The translations under genes and the position numbers were made by a program. Positions 6,986 through 54,421 of a DNA stretch of 64,000 nt are shown here, piece by piece. The notes under the pieces are model-generated. The model was not told the DNA's origin, searched no databases, and was given only the letters and a program-made list of their open reading frames with translations. The stretch is from Klebsormidium nitens (lineage: Eukaryota; Plantae; Klebsormidiophyceae), in assembly GCA_000708835.1 (NCBI GenBank), contig DF237034.1, positions 124,001-188,000 on the forward strand. Reading direction: 5' to 3'. The number at the start of each line of letters is the position of its first letter. Within the stretch, counting starts at the first letter, position 1.

Positions 6986-7795
6986 NNNNNNNNNNNNNNN
7001 NNNNNNNNNNNNNNNNNNNNNNNNNNNNNNNNNNNNNNNNNNNNNNNNNNNNNNNNNNNNNNNNNNNNNNNNNNNNNNNNNNNNNNNNNNNNNNNNNNNN
7101 NNNNNNNNNNNNNNNNNNNNNNNNNNNNNNNNNNNNNNNNNNNNNNNNNNNNNNNNNNNNNNNNNNNNNNNNNNNNNNNNNNNNNNNNNNNNNNNNNNNN
7201 NNNNNNNNNNNNNNNNNNNNNNNNNNNNNNNNNNNNNNNNNNNNNNNNNNNNNNNNNNNNNNNNNNNNNNNNNNNNNNNNNNNNNNNNNNNNNNNNNNNN
7301 NNNNNNNNNNNNNNNNNNNNNNNNNNNNNNNNNNNNNNNNNNNNNNNNNNNNNNNNNNNNNNNNNNNNNNNNNNNNNNNNNNNNNNNNNNNNNNNNNNNN
7401 NNNNNNNNNNNNNNNNNNNNNNNNNNNNNNNNNNNNNNNNNNNNNNNNNNNNNNNNNNNNNNNNNNNNNNNNNNNNNNNNNNNNNNNNNNNNNNNNNNNN
7501 NNNNNNNNNNNNNNNNNNNNNNNNNNNNNNNNNNNNNNNNNNNNNNNNNNNNNNNNNNNNNNNNNNNNNNNNNNNNNNNNNNNNNNNNNNNNNNNNNNNN
7601 NNNNNNNNNNNNNNNNNNNNNNNNNNNNNNNNNNNNNNNNNNNNNNNNNNNNNNNNNNNNNNNNNNNNNNNNNNNNNNNNNNNNNNNNNNNNNNNNNNNN
7701 NNNNNNNNNNNNNNNNNNNNNNNNNNNNNNNNNNNNNNNNNNNNNNNNNNNNNNNNNNNNNNNNNNNNNNNNNNNNNNNNNNNNNNNNNNNNNNN
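6986..7795. other. Assembly gap (N run)
   Basis: About 810 consecutive N; ORF calls spanning it are artefacts. Confidence 0.99.
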
Positions 7796-10700: not shown

Positions 10701-12239
10701 CTTCTGAAAAGCAAGTACCAATTTCACCTCTTCCTTAAATGGAATATCAGCTTAACTTAGCACATGGGTAGTTCGTAGCTGGCCCCCGGATTTAAGTATC
10801 TTTATGTGAGAAGAGGGTACTGAGCTCATGAATCAAGTTAGTATGTGGCTAGACGTGCATGCGGCTTTTGACCACGTAACTTACCGCGCGTTCGATCGGC
10901 GGTAACCCCGTAGCTGTATATATCTGAGAGCATGTTCAGTGCGCACATATCTTGCGGTGGGCCCTTATCTCCACGTTTATAGCGGTATATGCCCGACCCG
11001 GCCAATCCTTGAGAGCAAGCAAAACTGATTTTGATGCACTGCATATATACGCGGTCCAATGGCCGGCGCCCGGCCGAATCAGCCGATCAAGTCATTCAAT
11101 ATGAACCGTCATGGTCACCACAAGGCATGAACACGTACCCCTCGGCTGGCGCCCACCGACAACGTGACCGGTCGTAACCTGACGCCGGACGACTTGCAGG
11201 ACCTGGCCAAATTCCTCTGCGACCGCCTCCGACATCAAGGGCAAGACCCAGGAGTAGAAATGTAGCTTGTCTAGCATAAACAATTAGCCACGATCGTTAG
11301 TCATCACGCCACCCACCGTAGCCGTTTGCATAGCTTACAAAACATACTATACATCCCATCCGTGTGCATGATTTGCTAAGCTGCAGTGTGTTAGTGTGCT
11401 GCTTGTGTTCTGTAGTAATAAACATTGGACATGACTTGCAGCCGTAGCAAGCTCTGCAGAGTCAATTCATTGTATCCCGGTACGTCTCACCGGAGCATTG
11501 CCCGATGGCTCAGCGTGGCCCAGGGTTTATAAGGACATGTGACCATATGTAAAGGGGCCAGATCTTCCATGGTTTTAATCAATCATATTCTACAAGGCCG
11601 GCGGCCAATTAAGCACGTAGCTTGATCGAACTAAGGCGTACCGTGACCGTCTGCACATGCATGCGTTTAGCAAGTGGCATTGCGTGATGGTACGAACGTA
11701 CTCAGCATGCCGCCGGTACTAAATTAAGTTCTGCCACTTGAATTGCACATTGTATCTAGCTGACCGGGCGCCGTACTATTAAAGCTAGCTGACATATGCA
11801 TCAGTATGCCCGCGTGTGAGGAACTCTAGAGCATCGTTCACCTGTATATGGCGAATTGCAAGCAACAGAGCCAGCATACACAGAAGTGCGGGCGGAAGCT
11901 TCCGACCTTCTCATCGGATAAACTAGCTCATTGACTTAATCTAGGTCATTGCTTGACGAGTCCTGCTTACTATCAGTGCAGGCGAGCTAAGACTTACAAC
12001 TCGTCACCACTTCTTCATATCCAGCCCTTCTGAGGCGCTTGTGGGCTGGAAGCTCAGAATCCATTGTGTGCCTATACCCTATTTCAAGACCTGTTACTGC
12101 AGCCTGTTCTCCTACTCGAGACGATGCCCCTCGCTTCCACACTATGTACAAGCGCGAAGAAGAGCAGCATCCTTTGACGAGGTGCTTCGAAGACTTTTCG
12201 AGCCGCATACCTGGTTAGCACCTGTTGCAGCAGCTAACA

Positions 12240-15200
12240 CTACCGGTTCTGTTCGCCCGGAGCAGCCTTGAGGTGGCGCGGTCGTGCGTGCACCTCCCTC
12301 ATTGGGCTGGGCCGGTACGCCTTGTATGCGAGCCTGCCCACTTGCGCGATCACCGCCTCGGCCTCCCGATCGTACTGGCTCTGCAGCTCGAGGGGAATCC
12401 GAGATTAGCCGGTAGCTCTTTTTAGAGAACAGGAGAGCAACGATTCGCGTCGTGAAGCAGCCATAGACTCCTGGAACCTTGCGTTGAGTAACGGGGCCCG
12501 GACTTGCGCCGCCAGAAGAAAAACGCGCAGGGAACGTACCCGAAGCAAGAACAAAAGCCGGCAGCAGGCAGCTGGAAAAGCGCCCGTCGCCTGCAATTGA
12601 GAGAGCAATCACTGCAAACTGGCCGGACGGAAGCCAGGCGGATCAGGGCCGCCCACAAAGAAGCCATAGGTAGGGTCCGCCCGTTCGGGCCCGGGTTTAC
12701 CTTGAGTATTCCCGACACCATGGCCGCGACGACCACCAGGTTGTCGGGGCTGCCCACCTCAATGATGCCCACGTCGTTGCACACCCCCATGATCGTCCCT
12801 GCGCGCGCGACCACCGTGGGAAGGCACCGGTCAGTCTCAACGGCAGCCAAAGGAGGCAGTAGCAGGCGGACTGGCAGCGAATGGCTTGTCGAGAGGAACA
12901 CTTGCCAATGCATGTATTGGACGGTGACGGGTCAGACTGAAAGAACATGCATCCTGCACATTGGCCTCTTCGGGCCGTCTTGACCTAGAAGTAGGCTCCG
13001 CATGGCTCTCATAAGCTCCGCTCGACTGACCCGTTTTGTGGTAGACCCGGGTGTCTCTGGGCAGCCCGCGCGGCAGCCGCCGTTTGCCGTACTGCTGGCG
13101 CGAGAGGATGCCCATGCAGTGGCGGGTCCACTTGGGCCGCAGCAGGGCGCCCTCCGCCAGCCGCCGCAGCAACAGCGCCCTGCACCCACGCCGGAGACAC
13201 GCTGTCAAACGAGGCGAAAACCCAGAGACTCTGCCGCAAAGTATACGGGAAGTAAGGGTATCTCCTCCGGCAGCGTGACCATCAAGTTCGACAATCTCTT
13301 ACCTCTCGAAATAATGGCCTTTCTCAGAAGACGTCCTTTGCATCCTTCGTGGCCCCTTATGTGCATCCCCACCGTCTGTACGTCGATCGGCAAGAGCTTG
13401 GTGCAAACAAACGCCTACTAAAGCTGTCAAAGTTCTTCTCCCAACAAGCATCTGCCGCGTCATTCTAAAAGCAGGCCCCTTCAGACTGGACTGGAATAAA
13501 GACCCGTTGTGCGTGCCTTGTTGTCGAAACAGGATCCCCTTTCTCAGGCCGCTTATCACCGACTTCTTTCCGGGCTGCGCTTTACGAGAAAGGGTCTTCG
13601 TGCCCACCCGCTTACATGTCCTCCGGCGATGCCGTGTTGTCCACCGCTGCCGCCACCGCCATCGAGTCTCGCCGCGCGCTGCGCCCGCCCACCTTGTAGT
13701 TCTCCTCGGCCAGCCGCTCCGCCCCCAGGAACGACTTCACGCTCAGCGCCGTGTTGGCCGCGTCCGCTTCCGCAATGATCGCTGCCCGCTGCGACGCCGA
13801 CATGGCCTCCCATCTGACAGCAGAGGGAGGACGAGTCAAAAAGGCCGGTAAGCGCACTCGGGGGACAGTGGTCGCTGATGGTGGCTGAAGACGTCTCGTT
13901 CAGATCTCTGAAGAGGTGCTCGACCCAGATTACGAGAGACTTGCAGCTTCTTTACAAAGCTTCGCTGGCTAGCTTGTGTCGCCTGAATGTGTTGTATTCA
14001 GAAAGAATAAGAGGGGATCTTTATACGCACTGGATGAACATTGCCGCTTCTCTTGCAATCCAGACCCGTGTGAACAATTTCCGCCCTGTCAGGTGAAGTG
14101 CAGCCGATTCTTTTCACTTTTCGCCCTGTGACTGGCTTCAATGCCGGTTCCAGCATCTTCAGATACTTACACAGCCAAGATCCCCTACTCAGACCACGCG
14201 CCTCACCGTTTTGCGATCTGTGTGGCCGACAGGTCCCTGAACGACGGCGTCATGCCCATGGCGATGAGGAACGCCTGGCGCTGCGAGAGGCAGAGGTCCG
14301 TGTGGTGCAGGCCCTGCTCGCGCAGCAGCGCACGCACGCGGCCCAGCGTCGCCTGCTGCAGGACCAGGTCCGCCGCCGTGTTGTCGCTCACCACGCACGC
14401 CAGCTCCATGCACTCGCCCAGCGTGGCCGTCTCGCCGCTGCAGAAACAAGGAAAACGTTTCGGGCCTGCTACTCAAGTGATTTTAAGAACGAAAGGCGGG
14501 CTTCCGAGCGAAAAAGCGTGAGCTGGGCAGCTACGCGCGGAATCTGAGAGGTTAAGAGGCCTTGAGTTGACGTCCCCCTGTGTTGGATGGCGAGGTTCTC
14601 GACCGACCACCGAGCCGACGAACGAGCCACCGATGTCCAAAGGTCCTTTTTAAACATGAAGAGAGTGCGGGATCGTCCCCCAGTAGCGGGCCGTACCTCG
14701 GCCGCTCGTGCAGCTCCCCCGAGCCGATGCACTTGACGTCCTCCGTGACGCGCAGCCGCGTGGTGAGGCGCACCCCCCGGGGGTCCGCCTCCGCCTCCTG
14801 CAGCTGCTGCGCGGCCGCGATGATGATGGGAACCTTGGCAACACTCGCGAGCGGGAACGGCTCCCTGCCGTTGATGGACACGCGCTCCCCGCTCGGCAGG
14901 TGCTCCACCACCACGCCAACGTGCATCTTCCTGTACAGCGCCACGAGAGGGTGAGAACTGCCTTTGATGTCAAAAGGAACTGAAGAAAGGGACCTTTTTG
15001 CATGCCAACGACAAAGTTGGACAACAGAGCCAACACAAGGCGGCGGGCGGCCGCACTTCGGTCAGCGGTACTTATGAGATTGAGGGGAACTCAAAGAATC
15101 GGGTTCGGGACATGCCTGGCAGATCCTTACAGCCTTGAGCGGACCTGCTGTTTCTCAAACGCGCGCTTTCATGCGTCTCATCTGTGGATAATTCGGAAAG

Positions 15201-16870
15201 AACTGCGGGATTAGGCTGAAGAAGGTCCTGAGTGTTTGCGAATCCCCGACTTCTCCCGCTTCAAAAGGATTTATGACTTAGAGACACGAAAGCCTTGGAG
15301 AAGGTGTGGCGACTCACTTTTTCCGCTCCTGCCTCGCAACAAGCCGCTGAAGCTCCTCCTTCAGTTTCCTGGTTCGCGACATGGCCCCGGCCCTGTTTTG
15401 CCTGCGGAACCACGGCAGGGGCTGAGGCAGAGACTGCCACCACTTGCCGTCCTGATCCCCGCTCTCCAATGTTTCCCACCTGGGCAAGGGGCCCACCGCC
15501 GCCTCGTCCCCAAACCCCTTCTCCTCTTTCTCCTCCATGATGGTGGATTCCAACTCAAGGCCCTCAGCGATGCACTGGGAGGCGGGCGGTGGCACATCGG
15601 CCGGGCCAGACCTCTGTAGAGGGGGAGATTCAGAGATAGGAGACGCATAAAAACACTTGAAAGACACATGCTTCTAAGGGCTGCTGCCCAAAACTGAGCC
15701 CCTCTGCGGGGCCAGTGAAAGGTGAATACACAAGCTATGGACACCGATTGATGATCACCTGTCATGAGCCCAATACTTTTGATGTTGCTACACGCCCCTA
15801 CTATATTCCTTGTCGTAGCAGATGGAGGTACCTGTTTTGAAGGATCGAAGTTGTAGAGAGACGTCCAACTTTCTCATACGATGTTTGCAAGTGATCATGG
15901 ACTGTCATCTGAGGTCAGTAGGATTTCTACTTGGGACTTCACGATCTCCTCCTGACATTGAGAACCTGCCAAAGGACCTCACCGACTCTCCATCGTCTGC
16001 TCGTCGATCCACCGCTTCTCTGAGCTCAGCAGGCCCCAGCTCAAGGGATGTTCCATGCTTGTCATGTGCCAGGCTGACCACTGAAGATGCCGAAGTGGAA
16101 ATTGCTGTGGGAGAAGGATGCACATGCTTGATGCGCACTCCATTCTCAGGGGGCAATACAATCAAATTGTCCAGGATGTGAAAGTCTGGCTCAGGCCTGA
16201 AGGAACTGTGGGAAGCTCCAACTACTTCCTTCTCATTGGTCTAATGCATCTTCTTGTCATCTTTCCCATTGTTGCTGAGAAATGTGAGCTGGTACTGGAG
16301 GTGACCAGATGTTCCTCTGTTCGTAGCCGTGTTCTGATTTCGGCAGTAAGCCTCCTTTCCAAGTGCACCACCCGAAATCCAAGTGTGCCACTTACCTGCA
16401 AAACATCCTGAAGCCAATTCCAGGGCCTGATGGGTTGCCTGGACTCTGCTTCTGGGCTGCAGCAAAAAGGAGGCCACATTTAGTAGACAAAGGTCTTTCA
16501 CTCAACCTCTTTACTGTGTCCGAGTAAAGCCCGGCAAAGTGGGTCTGTGTCACTTGTGCACTACAGCGCGCGATCAAGGCACAAGGAAAGGCGTGATTTC
16601 TTTTGAGACTTGCATTGCATGGTCCAAAGAATGACATGGAATTGCTGCCAGCTAGAAGCGCACCTTCTCTTTCCACCAGAAGATCTCCTGCGCCTCCCTC
16701 ATATGCTGAAGGAGAGTCAGTTGCAAGTTATCTTGGAACTGCAACCAATTCAAATCTTTCATAGCGGCTGGCACCAGCATCAAGACTTTAGTGGACCACA
16801 AGTGGAGGACTTTTCGTCTTGGTTGTGCAAAACCGTTCTGAAGCCAGGCACGCCGCACCACCCTTTGCAT
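12240..16870 (-). CDS. Class A beta-lactamase-like / PBP-like serine hydrolase (multi-exon)
   Basis: Core exons 14930-14698 (FPLASVAK = SxxK), 14437-14207 (CVVSDNTAAD = SDN), 13813-13616 (DNTASPEDM), 13179-13031 (RQQYGKRRLPRGLP..VYHKT), 12798-12701 (GTIMGVCNDVGII, completing KTG) and 12380-12240 (SQYDREAEAVIAQVGRLAYKAY..*) all join in phase with GT-AG sites. Upstream exon 15613-15318 is also in phase. Exons 16104-15983, 16456-16396 and 16870-16664 are phase-compatible but less certain. Confidence 0.86.
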
Positions 16871-17018
16871 CAAAGTTCTCAATGTGTGTTAATGCTCTGC
16901 ATCAAGGTTCTCAAACTTCGAAGTGTAGAGCTCTGCATTGCATTGAAAGATGGGCAATGCACAGCTCTCTTGCAGGTCTGATGGAATTTTGAGAGAGCCT
17001 AAACCTAACTCAAAGCTC

Positions 17019-42304: not shown

Positions 42305-54421
<12,117 letters not shown>

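Follow-up and report, generated by a model that had tools for sequence, protein, structure and literature searches.

In a 64,000-nucleotide stretch of the nuclear genome of the alga Klebsormidium nitens (contig DF237034.1, positions 124,001 to 188,000; hereafter the window), we characterized the minus-strand gene KFL_000850290, whose protein joins a class A beta-lactamase fold to a large helical segment that takes the place of the omega loop. As judged from its sequence, this protein has the predicted acylation machinery of the fold, lacks the Glu166/Asn170 deacylation pair and is not a canonical class A beta-lactamase. We propose, holding the chances to be about evenly balanced, that it is a penicillin-sensitive DD-peptidase of the plastid peptidoglycan, from a family acquired once from a bacterium whose protein bore the same insert. 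A first-pass annotation of the window had presented the gene as its best candidate for an undescribed system. In the literature searched we found no description of it in algae, there being no link of PF13354 to algae nor of beta-lactamases to Klebsormidium in this sense; the public record, for its part, already carries the gene as a 522-residue "hypothetical protein" with the automatic label 'Beta-lactamase class A catalytic domain'. That public protein (P0085) is identical to our spliced model from Met57 to the end; residue numbers below follow the full open frame of 578 codons unless P0085 is named.

KFL_000850290 has 10 exons and nine GT..AG introns, and all its junctions are seen in spliced contigs from four sequencing runs of four studies. 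The RNA nature of these runs is a guess from their labels; contigs devoid of the nine introns cannot derive from genomic DNA, and hence the gene is transcribed and spliced. Its orthologue in a related Klebsormidium lies on a 7.5-kb genomic contig (L082), which we reached via an 86-residue fragment 91% identical to exon 5, and keeps every splice site. Nucleotide identity between the two is 87-93% in the catalytic-domain exons and 53-71% in the introns, and the ratio of nonsynonymous to synonymous substitution (dN/dS, Nei-Gojobori) stands at 0.13 in the catalytic domain and at 0.15 in exon 4, with 0.48 in residues 37-130 and 0.64 in residues 1-36. KFL_000850290 is thus under purifying selection.

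A class A fold with an enlarged omega-loop region

The PF13354 (Beta-lactamase2) profile matches the whole of P0085 with 161.3 bits (E 2.8e-47; profile positions 1-212 of 214; gathering threshold 22), and three exons match it separately and collinearly (profile 1-66, 73-117 and 140-187; E 3.8e-11, 1e-7 and 2e-9). Exon 7, which falls between the second and third of these, has no Pfam match. The motifs that the first-pass annotation had listed are indeed present in the order it gave, all on the minus strand: FPLASVAK, in which S258-V-A-K261 (14845-14834) provides the nucleophile serine and the general-base lysine; VSDNTAAD, with S324-D-N326 (14388-14380); DNTASP, with a D179-like anchor at D442 (13641); and VYHKTGTI, with K498-T499-G500 (13037..12797). 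As had also been recognized, the last of these is split by an intron (12799-13030), which interrupts the codon of G500. The class C-type LACTB family was considered as an alternative assignment and rejected, the PF00144 score of 19 bits being under the cut-off of 27. Searches of the Atlas and the PDB with single exons returned just generic PF13354 or class A matches.

In class A enzymes, Glu166 (with Asn170) sits on an omega loop of about 16 residues closed by the R164-D179 pair and provides the deacylating water. Across the family alignment of KFL_000850290, the Ser and Lys of SxxK, SDN, KTG, R360, D442-N443 and E416 are invariant, and between SDN and the DN anchor invariant charge is confined to D329 (shortly after SDN), R360 and E416. 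Aligned R360 and D442 sit where the R164-D179 pair closes the class A loop; the span between them is 82 residues against the 16 of class A, a five-fold expansion. No member of the family alignment has an acidic residue at class A positions 160-170 by sequence register. The residue in the register of Glu166, counted after a conserved Thr, is Gln359 (Asn in the bacterial members) or, in an alternative register, Ala362. The NCBIfam equivalog for class A enzymes, NF033103, likewise scores P0085 at 122.1 bits, the Chlorokybus orthologue at 99.9 and a bacterial member at 114.8, all below the curated cut-off of 200. A further feature of the insert-bearing family is a conserved Cys-containing motif, KCIGSG.

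The AlphaFold model of P0085 residues 150-522 (mean predicted local distance difference test, pLDDT, 93; predicted template-modelling score, pTM, 0.90) presents the C-terminal ~355 residues as a class A beta-lactamase-fold domain. The insert, which reshapes the floor of the active site, is modelled at high confidence as four helices, including one of 32 residues. Foldseek places LRA-5 (8EO5/6/7), the Sphaerobacter protein 4EWF and PBP-A (2J7V etc.) at the top, with template-modelling (TM) scores by target of 0.84-0.90; their TM by query is just 0.61-0.64, because about 85 residues have no counterpart in the matched structures. The best sequence match in the PDB is the penicillin-binding protein PBP-A (TLL2115), with an E of 3e-22 by phmmer over two stretches that flank P0085 residues 298-385, while ORF12-type class A-like proteins are among the weaker PDB matches. 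The affinity to PBP-A-like proteins suggested at first is thus borne out by both Foldseek and phmmer, the cyanobacterial PBP-A type being closest among the solved structures.

PBP-A of Thermosynechococcus elongatus (TLL2115; 2J7V/2J8Y/2J9O/2JBF) has DD-carboxypeptidase and DD-endopeptidase activity, which penicillin blocks (PMC11189452). Like the KFL_000850290 protein, it has the class A fold and the SxxK, SDN and KTG motifs and no Glu166, in whose place the PDB title 'L158E mutant' indicates Leu158; its TM by target to our model is 0.86-0.89. It differs in having about 10 residues where the algal protein has 82, in lacking KCIGSG and in being only ~22% identical. LRA-5, a metagenomic class A 'beta-lactamase precursor' (8EO5/8EO6/8EO7), is the top Foldseek match (E 3e-18, TM by target 0.87-0.90) and is likewise devoid of Glu166, position 166 being Val; lacking this residue and the deacylating water, it has biologically insignificant beta-lactamase activity (PMC12777564). 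Unlike the algal protein, it has an omega loop of normal length, comprises ~290 residues, comes from a soil bacterium and shares ~24% identity. The canonical class A enzymes collected in NF033103 (TEM, CTX-M, KPC, PER and others) share with KFL_000850290 the fold and the three motifs in the same order. The algal protein departs from them in the missing Glu166/Asn170, in an omega-loop region five-fold longer, in its score of 122 bits against the required 200, and in being eukaryotic and encoded with introns, with a long extension at the N-terminus where those enzymes have a signal peptide.

The closest counterparts are bacterial proteins recorded as 'serine hydrolase' from MAGs of uncultured Eremiobacterota, Armatimonadota and allied groups (metagenome-assembled genomes; e.g., MBM3461874.1, MDQ7824567.1), which are 35-42% identical over the domain including the insert and have the same invariant residues. 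These uncharacterised proteins differ from the algal ones in their length of ~350-400 residues, their classic signal peptides and their lack of introns. There are also small lineage signatures: the bacterial members show TNR and YN(T/S)-R where the streptophyte ones show SQR and YG(K/R)RR. With a complete set of acylation motifs and, by sequence register, no deacylation base, the KFL_000850290 protein would, by analogy with its family, be expected to act as a penicillin-binding DD-peptidase and not as a beta-lactamase.

Relatives and descent of the insert-bearing family

Relatives were gathered by an exhaustive HMMER search with exon 5 plus two further searches, based on profiles or words. Those by words gave patchy results for proteins, missing even members of the query alignment and at first Spirogloea, and are not used here to claim absence. 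The eukaryotic members come from Chlorokybus, Mesostigma, two Closterium species, Mesotaenium, Spirogloea, Prasinoderma and a marine green alga. By these word-limited or one-exon searches, the algal occurrence of the family is in keeping with the retention of plastid peptidoglycan; no land-plant or core-chlorophyte member was seen, the same searches being too insensitive to call this an absence. In all algal members the bacterial signal peptide is replaced by an N-terminal extension of 100-600 residues, which in the orthologues other than those of Klebsormidium is long and rich in Ser, Ala or Arg. The named insert-bearing bacterial members belong to MAGs of Armatimonadota and Eremiobacterota. 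When 185,579 species genomes were scanned, the best among the matches listed were a 'Burkholderiales' MAG, an unclassified bacterium and Eremiobacterota/Vulcanimicrobiota.

In a tree of 46 sequences (LG+C20), the insert-bearing clade has a support of 100/99. Within it, the streptophyte algae group together at 94/80 and with Prasinoderma at 90/87, Chlorokybus and Mesostigma pair at 99/94, and Mesotaenium and Closterium at 93/88; the grouping of all eukaryotes has a support of 66/11. The streptophyte branching approximates the species tree except for Spirogloea, which forms an unresolved group with Klebsormidium apart from the other zygnematophytes, and this resemblance points to a lone ancient acquisition with vertical inheritance thereafter. 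The sole cyanobacterial locus among the best 80 (L069, Brasilonema, 27% identity) belongs to the outgroup that lacks the insert, set off by a branch with a support of 98/92, and the cyanobacterial Atlas clusters align over ~266 residues only, i.e., without the insert. Taken together, the sequences argue for a single early acquisition into the green lineage, with subsequent vertical descent, from a donor that shows no cyanobacterial signal.

The gene neighborhoods of the insert-bearing bacterial genes include DUF885, a ClpB-like ATPase, a squalene/phytoene synthase and lipoprotein-processing genes. The squalene/phytoene synthase (PF00494) gene is found immediately upstream of a Beta-lactamase2 gene with the insert in two MAGs of Vulcanimicrobiota (L004:1845-2933 and L005:2313-2960) and ~6 kb away from one on an unrelated metagenome contig (L081:14551-15633); this proximity may be a coincidence or a conserved envelope-lipid linkage.

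Several further homologs deserve mention. An intron-less family member on a compact marine eukaryotic contig (L083:1877-3217) is flanked by genes for NdhM and a Tctex-1 dynein light chain, on account of which we take its host to be a green alga; the contig points to a marine green alga with a small genome in which the NDH complex and this enzyme are both kept. A transcript-like protein of 482 residues (P0053) is 50% identical to that of KFL_000850290, its neighbour in the tree, and may represent a second class A-like gene of K. nitens or the orthologue of a related alga; a fragment of 250 residues on a genomic contig (P0020) has an N-terminal sequence in common with it. Five matches to exon 5 (P0003, P0012, P0015, P0017 and P0046) are bacterial proteins of 600-700 residues, each with two tandem PF13354 domains.

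Plastid peptidoglycan and competing explanations

Bacterial wall growth and division rely on low-molecular-weight DD-peptidases as trimming enzymes. Mosses keep plastid peptidoglycan, and work on peptidoglycan hydrolases exists for moss. In K. nitens, where plastid peptidoglycan has reportedly been visualised (Takano et al. 2018), the layer around the chloroplast is the only D-Ala-D-Ala polymer known, and hence the likely role of a DD-peptidase would be the trimming or remodelling of that layer. Plastid peptidoglycan is reported to be ancestral to the Chloroplastida, to have been lost in most Chlorophyta and to have been kept in the Prasinodermophyta (PMC10784329). Its synthesis is ascribed to a toolkit of ten enzymes (PMC10784329, PMC9434261), and the toolkit lists that we examined in the plastid-peptidoglycan literature name neither a low-molecular-weight DD-peptidase or DD-carboxypeptidase nor a class A-fold protein.

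In the mechanism that we propose, Ser258 would attack the D-Ala-D-Ala peptide bond, or that of the 4-3 cross-link, in the peptidoglycan stem peptide, and water would then free the shortened stem peptide, amounting to a DD-carboxypeptidase/DD-endopeptidase activity as in PBP-A. Beta-lactams would acylate and block the enzyme with little turnover, and its role would lie in trimming or remodelling the peptidoglycan around the chloroplast. A single early transfer from a bacterium with the same insert would have brought the gene family into the green lineage, with vertical inheritance thereafter in the lineages that keep plastid peptidoglycan. Of all this, the analyses establish the structure and expression of the gene, its selective constraint, the fold and motifs, the missing Glu166, and the distribution and tree of the family, while substrate, penicillin sensitivity and plastid location are what we infer for the KFL_000850290 protein. 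The enzyme would share its polymer and its status as a beta-lactam target with the plastid PBP1A of Physcomitrium, a high-molecular-weight class A penicillin-binding protein (PBP; transglycosylase/transpeptidase) of another family; in Closterium, chloroplast division is reported to be blocked by beta-lactams (PMC3398972).

We also put forward, more tentatively and with distinctly less than even confidence, a wider formulation: the family might be the missing low-molecular-weight PBP of the green plastid wall, a DD-carboxy/endopeptidase of streptophyte and early-diverging green algae that came from a non-cyanobacterial donor before the green split, uses a four-helix module not seen before where the omega loop would be and was lost toward land plants. 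If so, the machinery of the plastid wall would be chimeric in origin, and a second beta-lactam target would lie behind the antibiotic sensitivity of plastid division.

Several observations weigh against a plastid DD-peptidase. The plastid localisation envisaged in the first-pass annotation finds no backing in the N-terminus: the only presequence-like version is the one that begins at M1, which has a basic character (8 K/R against 1 D/E over residues 1-40) and is not conserved, the region of residues 1-36 being frameshifted in L082, while the conserved M37 start yields an N-terminus that is acidic and does not resemble a transit peptide. Land plants gave no member though mosses keep plastid peptidoglycan, with the searches again too insensitive to establish absence, and the bacterial gene neighborhoods offer no consistent peptidoglycan context. 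Members of the class A fold also act on substrates other than peptidoglycan. Finally, the residue at the Glu166 position was set by sequence register and not by model coordinates, and a carboxylate might in principle come from the invariant E416 of the insert, although some seven helical turns separate it from the D442 anchor.

The strongest competitor, which we regard as possible if rather unlikely, is that KFL_000850290 encodes a class A-fold serine hydrolase acting on a non-peptidoglycan substrate, such as a small-molecule ester or amide, in the cytosol or another compartment, and that the overlap with peptidoglycan-retaining lineages reflects merely the survival of old genes in early-diverging green algae. 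The two Klebsormidium sequences have no transit peptide in common, the insert, which has no solved counterpart (TM by query just 0.57-0.65), alters the floor of the active site, the KCIGSG cysteine is conserved, ORF12-type proteins appear among the weaker structural matches, and the bacterial loci are free of peptidoglycan genes, with a squalene/phytoene synthase nearby in three of them. Set against this are the full PBP-type motif set, invariant throughout the family, the DD-peptidase activity of the closest characterised relative, the signal peptides of the bacterial members, which place their action in the envelope, and an algal distribution that, as far as the word-limited or one-exon searches reached, tracks the retention of plastid peptidoglycan.

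With regard to origin, the first-pass annotation had raised an endosymbiotic remnant as one option, and a cyanobacterial source, in lieu of horizontal acquisition from another bacterium, might be read from PBP-A being the best solved match, from the age of the family in the green lineage implied by the union of Prasinoderma with the streptophyte algae, and from the several bacterial members on metagenome contigs devoid of assigned taxonomy. Nevertheless, among the matches listed all named insert-bearing relatives are from Eremiobacterota/Vulcanimicrobiota, Armatimonadota or the 'Burkholderiales' MAG, the recovered Brasilonema homologue falls outside their clade, and the cyanobacterial Atlas clusters align without the insert. 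The nearest relatives among these matches are non-cyanobacterial, and we consider the endosymbiotic source improbable.

The other option raised at the outset, a working beta-lactamase that shields the plastid PBPs from the beta-lactams of soil microbes, fares still worse and appears to us quite improbable. It could appeal to the class A fold with its SxxK, SDN and KTG motifs, to the terrestrial habit of K. nitens and to E416, whose position relative to Ser258 is predicted from helix geometry only. Yet there is no acidic residue at or beside the Glu166/Asn170 register, an 82-residue insert stands in for the omega loop, the NF033103 score lies under the class A cut-off, and the nearest structures, PBP-A and LRA-5, are themselves Glu166-less, one being a DD-peptidase and the other a nearly inactive precursor. 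Moreover, E416 is 26 residues before D442 on the 32-residue helix of the model and so, by simple helix geometry, should be ~20 A or more from Ser258. Going by sequence features, KFL_000850290 is more likely a plastid-wall trimming enzyme than an antibiotic-resistance enzyme.

There is next to no chance of contamination by bacteria, of a pseudogene or of a fortuitous pattern of open reading frames (ORFs), a reading which has nothing but the bacterial-type fold to commend it and is contradicted by the nine spliceosomal introns removed in RNA-derived contigs of four studies, the related-species orthologue with the same intron positions and a dN/dS of 0.13, the location in a 224,721-nt K. nitens scaffold and the orthologues in at least seven other green-lineage genomes, in keeping with the initial view of a domesticated gene.

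The proposed plastid DD-peptidase would offer a concrete, expressed and conserved candidate for a trimming enzyme in transformable or culturable algae (Klebsormidium, Closterium), and so open chloroplast-wall maturation, along with the complete range of beta-lactam targets in plastid division, to direct tests. The insert-bearing proteins also constitute a class A-fold subfamily, common to uncultured bacteria and green algae, that has an 82-residue helical replacement of the omega loop and no solved structure, and they bear on the interconversion of beta-lactamases and PBPs. Were the function to be unrelated to peptidoglycan, the gene would still illustrate cleanly how an ancient gene of bacterial origin was inherited vertically in early green lineages.

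Gene architecture and the surrounding window

In the first-pass annotation the gene ended at 15613; this position is only an exon boundary, and three more coding exons lie upstream of it (15983-16104, 16396-16458 and 16666-16870), extending the protein to up to 578 residues, with its ATG at 16870 and its stop at 12240-12242. The spliced contigs, aligned to positions 11600-16600, support the minus-strand junctions 12380/12701, 12798/13031, 13179/13616, 13813/14207, 14437/14697, 14930/15318, 15613/15983 and 16104/16396, every one GT..AG. The remaining junction, 16458/16666, is seen as a joint from 16458 to sequence mapping at 16666 and is present, along with 16104/16396, in all four runs. The minus-strand translation of 12100-15900 shows the four motifs in three frames, with stop-rich, GT..AG-bordered stretches between them. 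Two earlier candidates, an acceptor of the SxxK exon at 14957 and a start at 15538, were ruled out by the RNA junctions, the true acceptor being at 14930.

Exon 1 (16666..16920) holds the 5' leader and the start of the coding sequence; loose contig ends of 123-255 nt map from 16666 on. It is followed by exon 2 (16396..16458, residues 69-89), both junctions of which occur in four of four runs, and exon 3 (15983..16104, residues 90-130), bounded by junctions 15613/15983 and 16104/16396. Exon 4 (15318..15613, residues 131-228) encodes a conserved acidic segment ahead of the catalytic domain, along with that domain's first helix. Exon 5 (14697..14930, residues 229-306) carries SVAK and the family-specific KCIGSG motif (14734-14717) and corresponds to PF13354 profile positions 1-66, and exon 6 (14207..14437, residues 307-383) carries SDN and then S358-Q-R360, with the insert starting here. 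Most of the 82-residue insert is encoded by exon 7 (13616..13813, residues 384-449), together with E416 (13719-13717) and D442-N443 (13641-13636). Exon 8 (13031..13179, residues 450-499; profile 140-187) ends with Y-H-K498-T499 and the first base of the G500 codon, which is completed by exon 9 (12701..12798, residues 500-532), the exon that also encodes strands beta-3/beta-4. Exon 10 (11841..12380) encodes the C-terminal helix (residues 533-578) and the stop (12242-12240), and continues as a 3' untranslated region to ~11841. The GC content at third codon positions (GC3) of the coding sequence is 0.81.

The candidate starts are M1 (16870), M31 (16780), M37 (16762) and M57 (16702), the last being that of the public annotation; M37 is the first ATG conserved in the L082 orthologue. 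RNA contigs extend to at least 16897-16920, beyond the public start, and a 7-codon upstream ORF in the 5' leader (16902-16879, minus strand) precedes M1.

Some minor variants were noted in passing. In one run (X1), a minor alternative acceptor of exon 7 lies 8 nt upstream of the main one (joint 13178/13607; 13607/13615), with a depth of 11.7 against 44.9, and would shift the frame. Several introns are covered by low-depth contigs, probably unspliced RNA or traces of DNA. In exon 8 of the related-species orthologue (L082:4302-4445), a 6-nt gap appears to remove two codons (Val-Tyr) just before HKTG, either a real deletion or an assembly error. Elsewhere in the window, the ORFs flanking KFL_000850290 have zero Pfam matches, and the low-GC bins at 6986-7795 and 52111-52704 are caused by runs of N (assembly gaps) and are not AT-rich islands.

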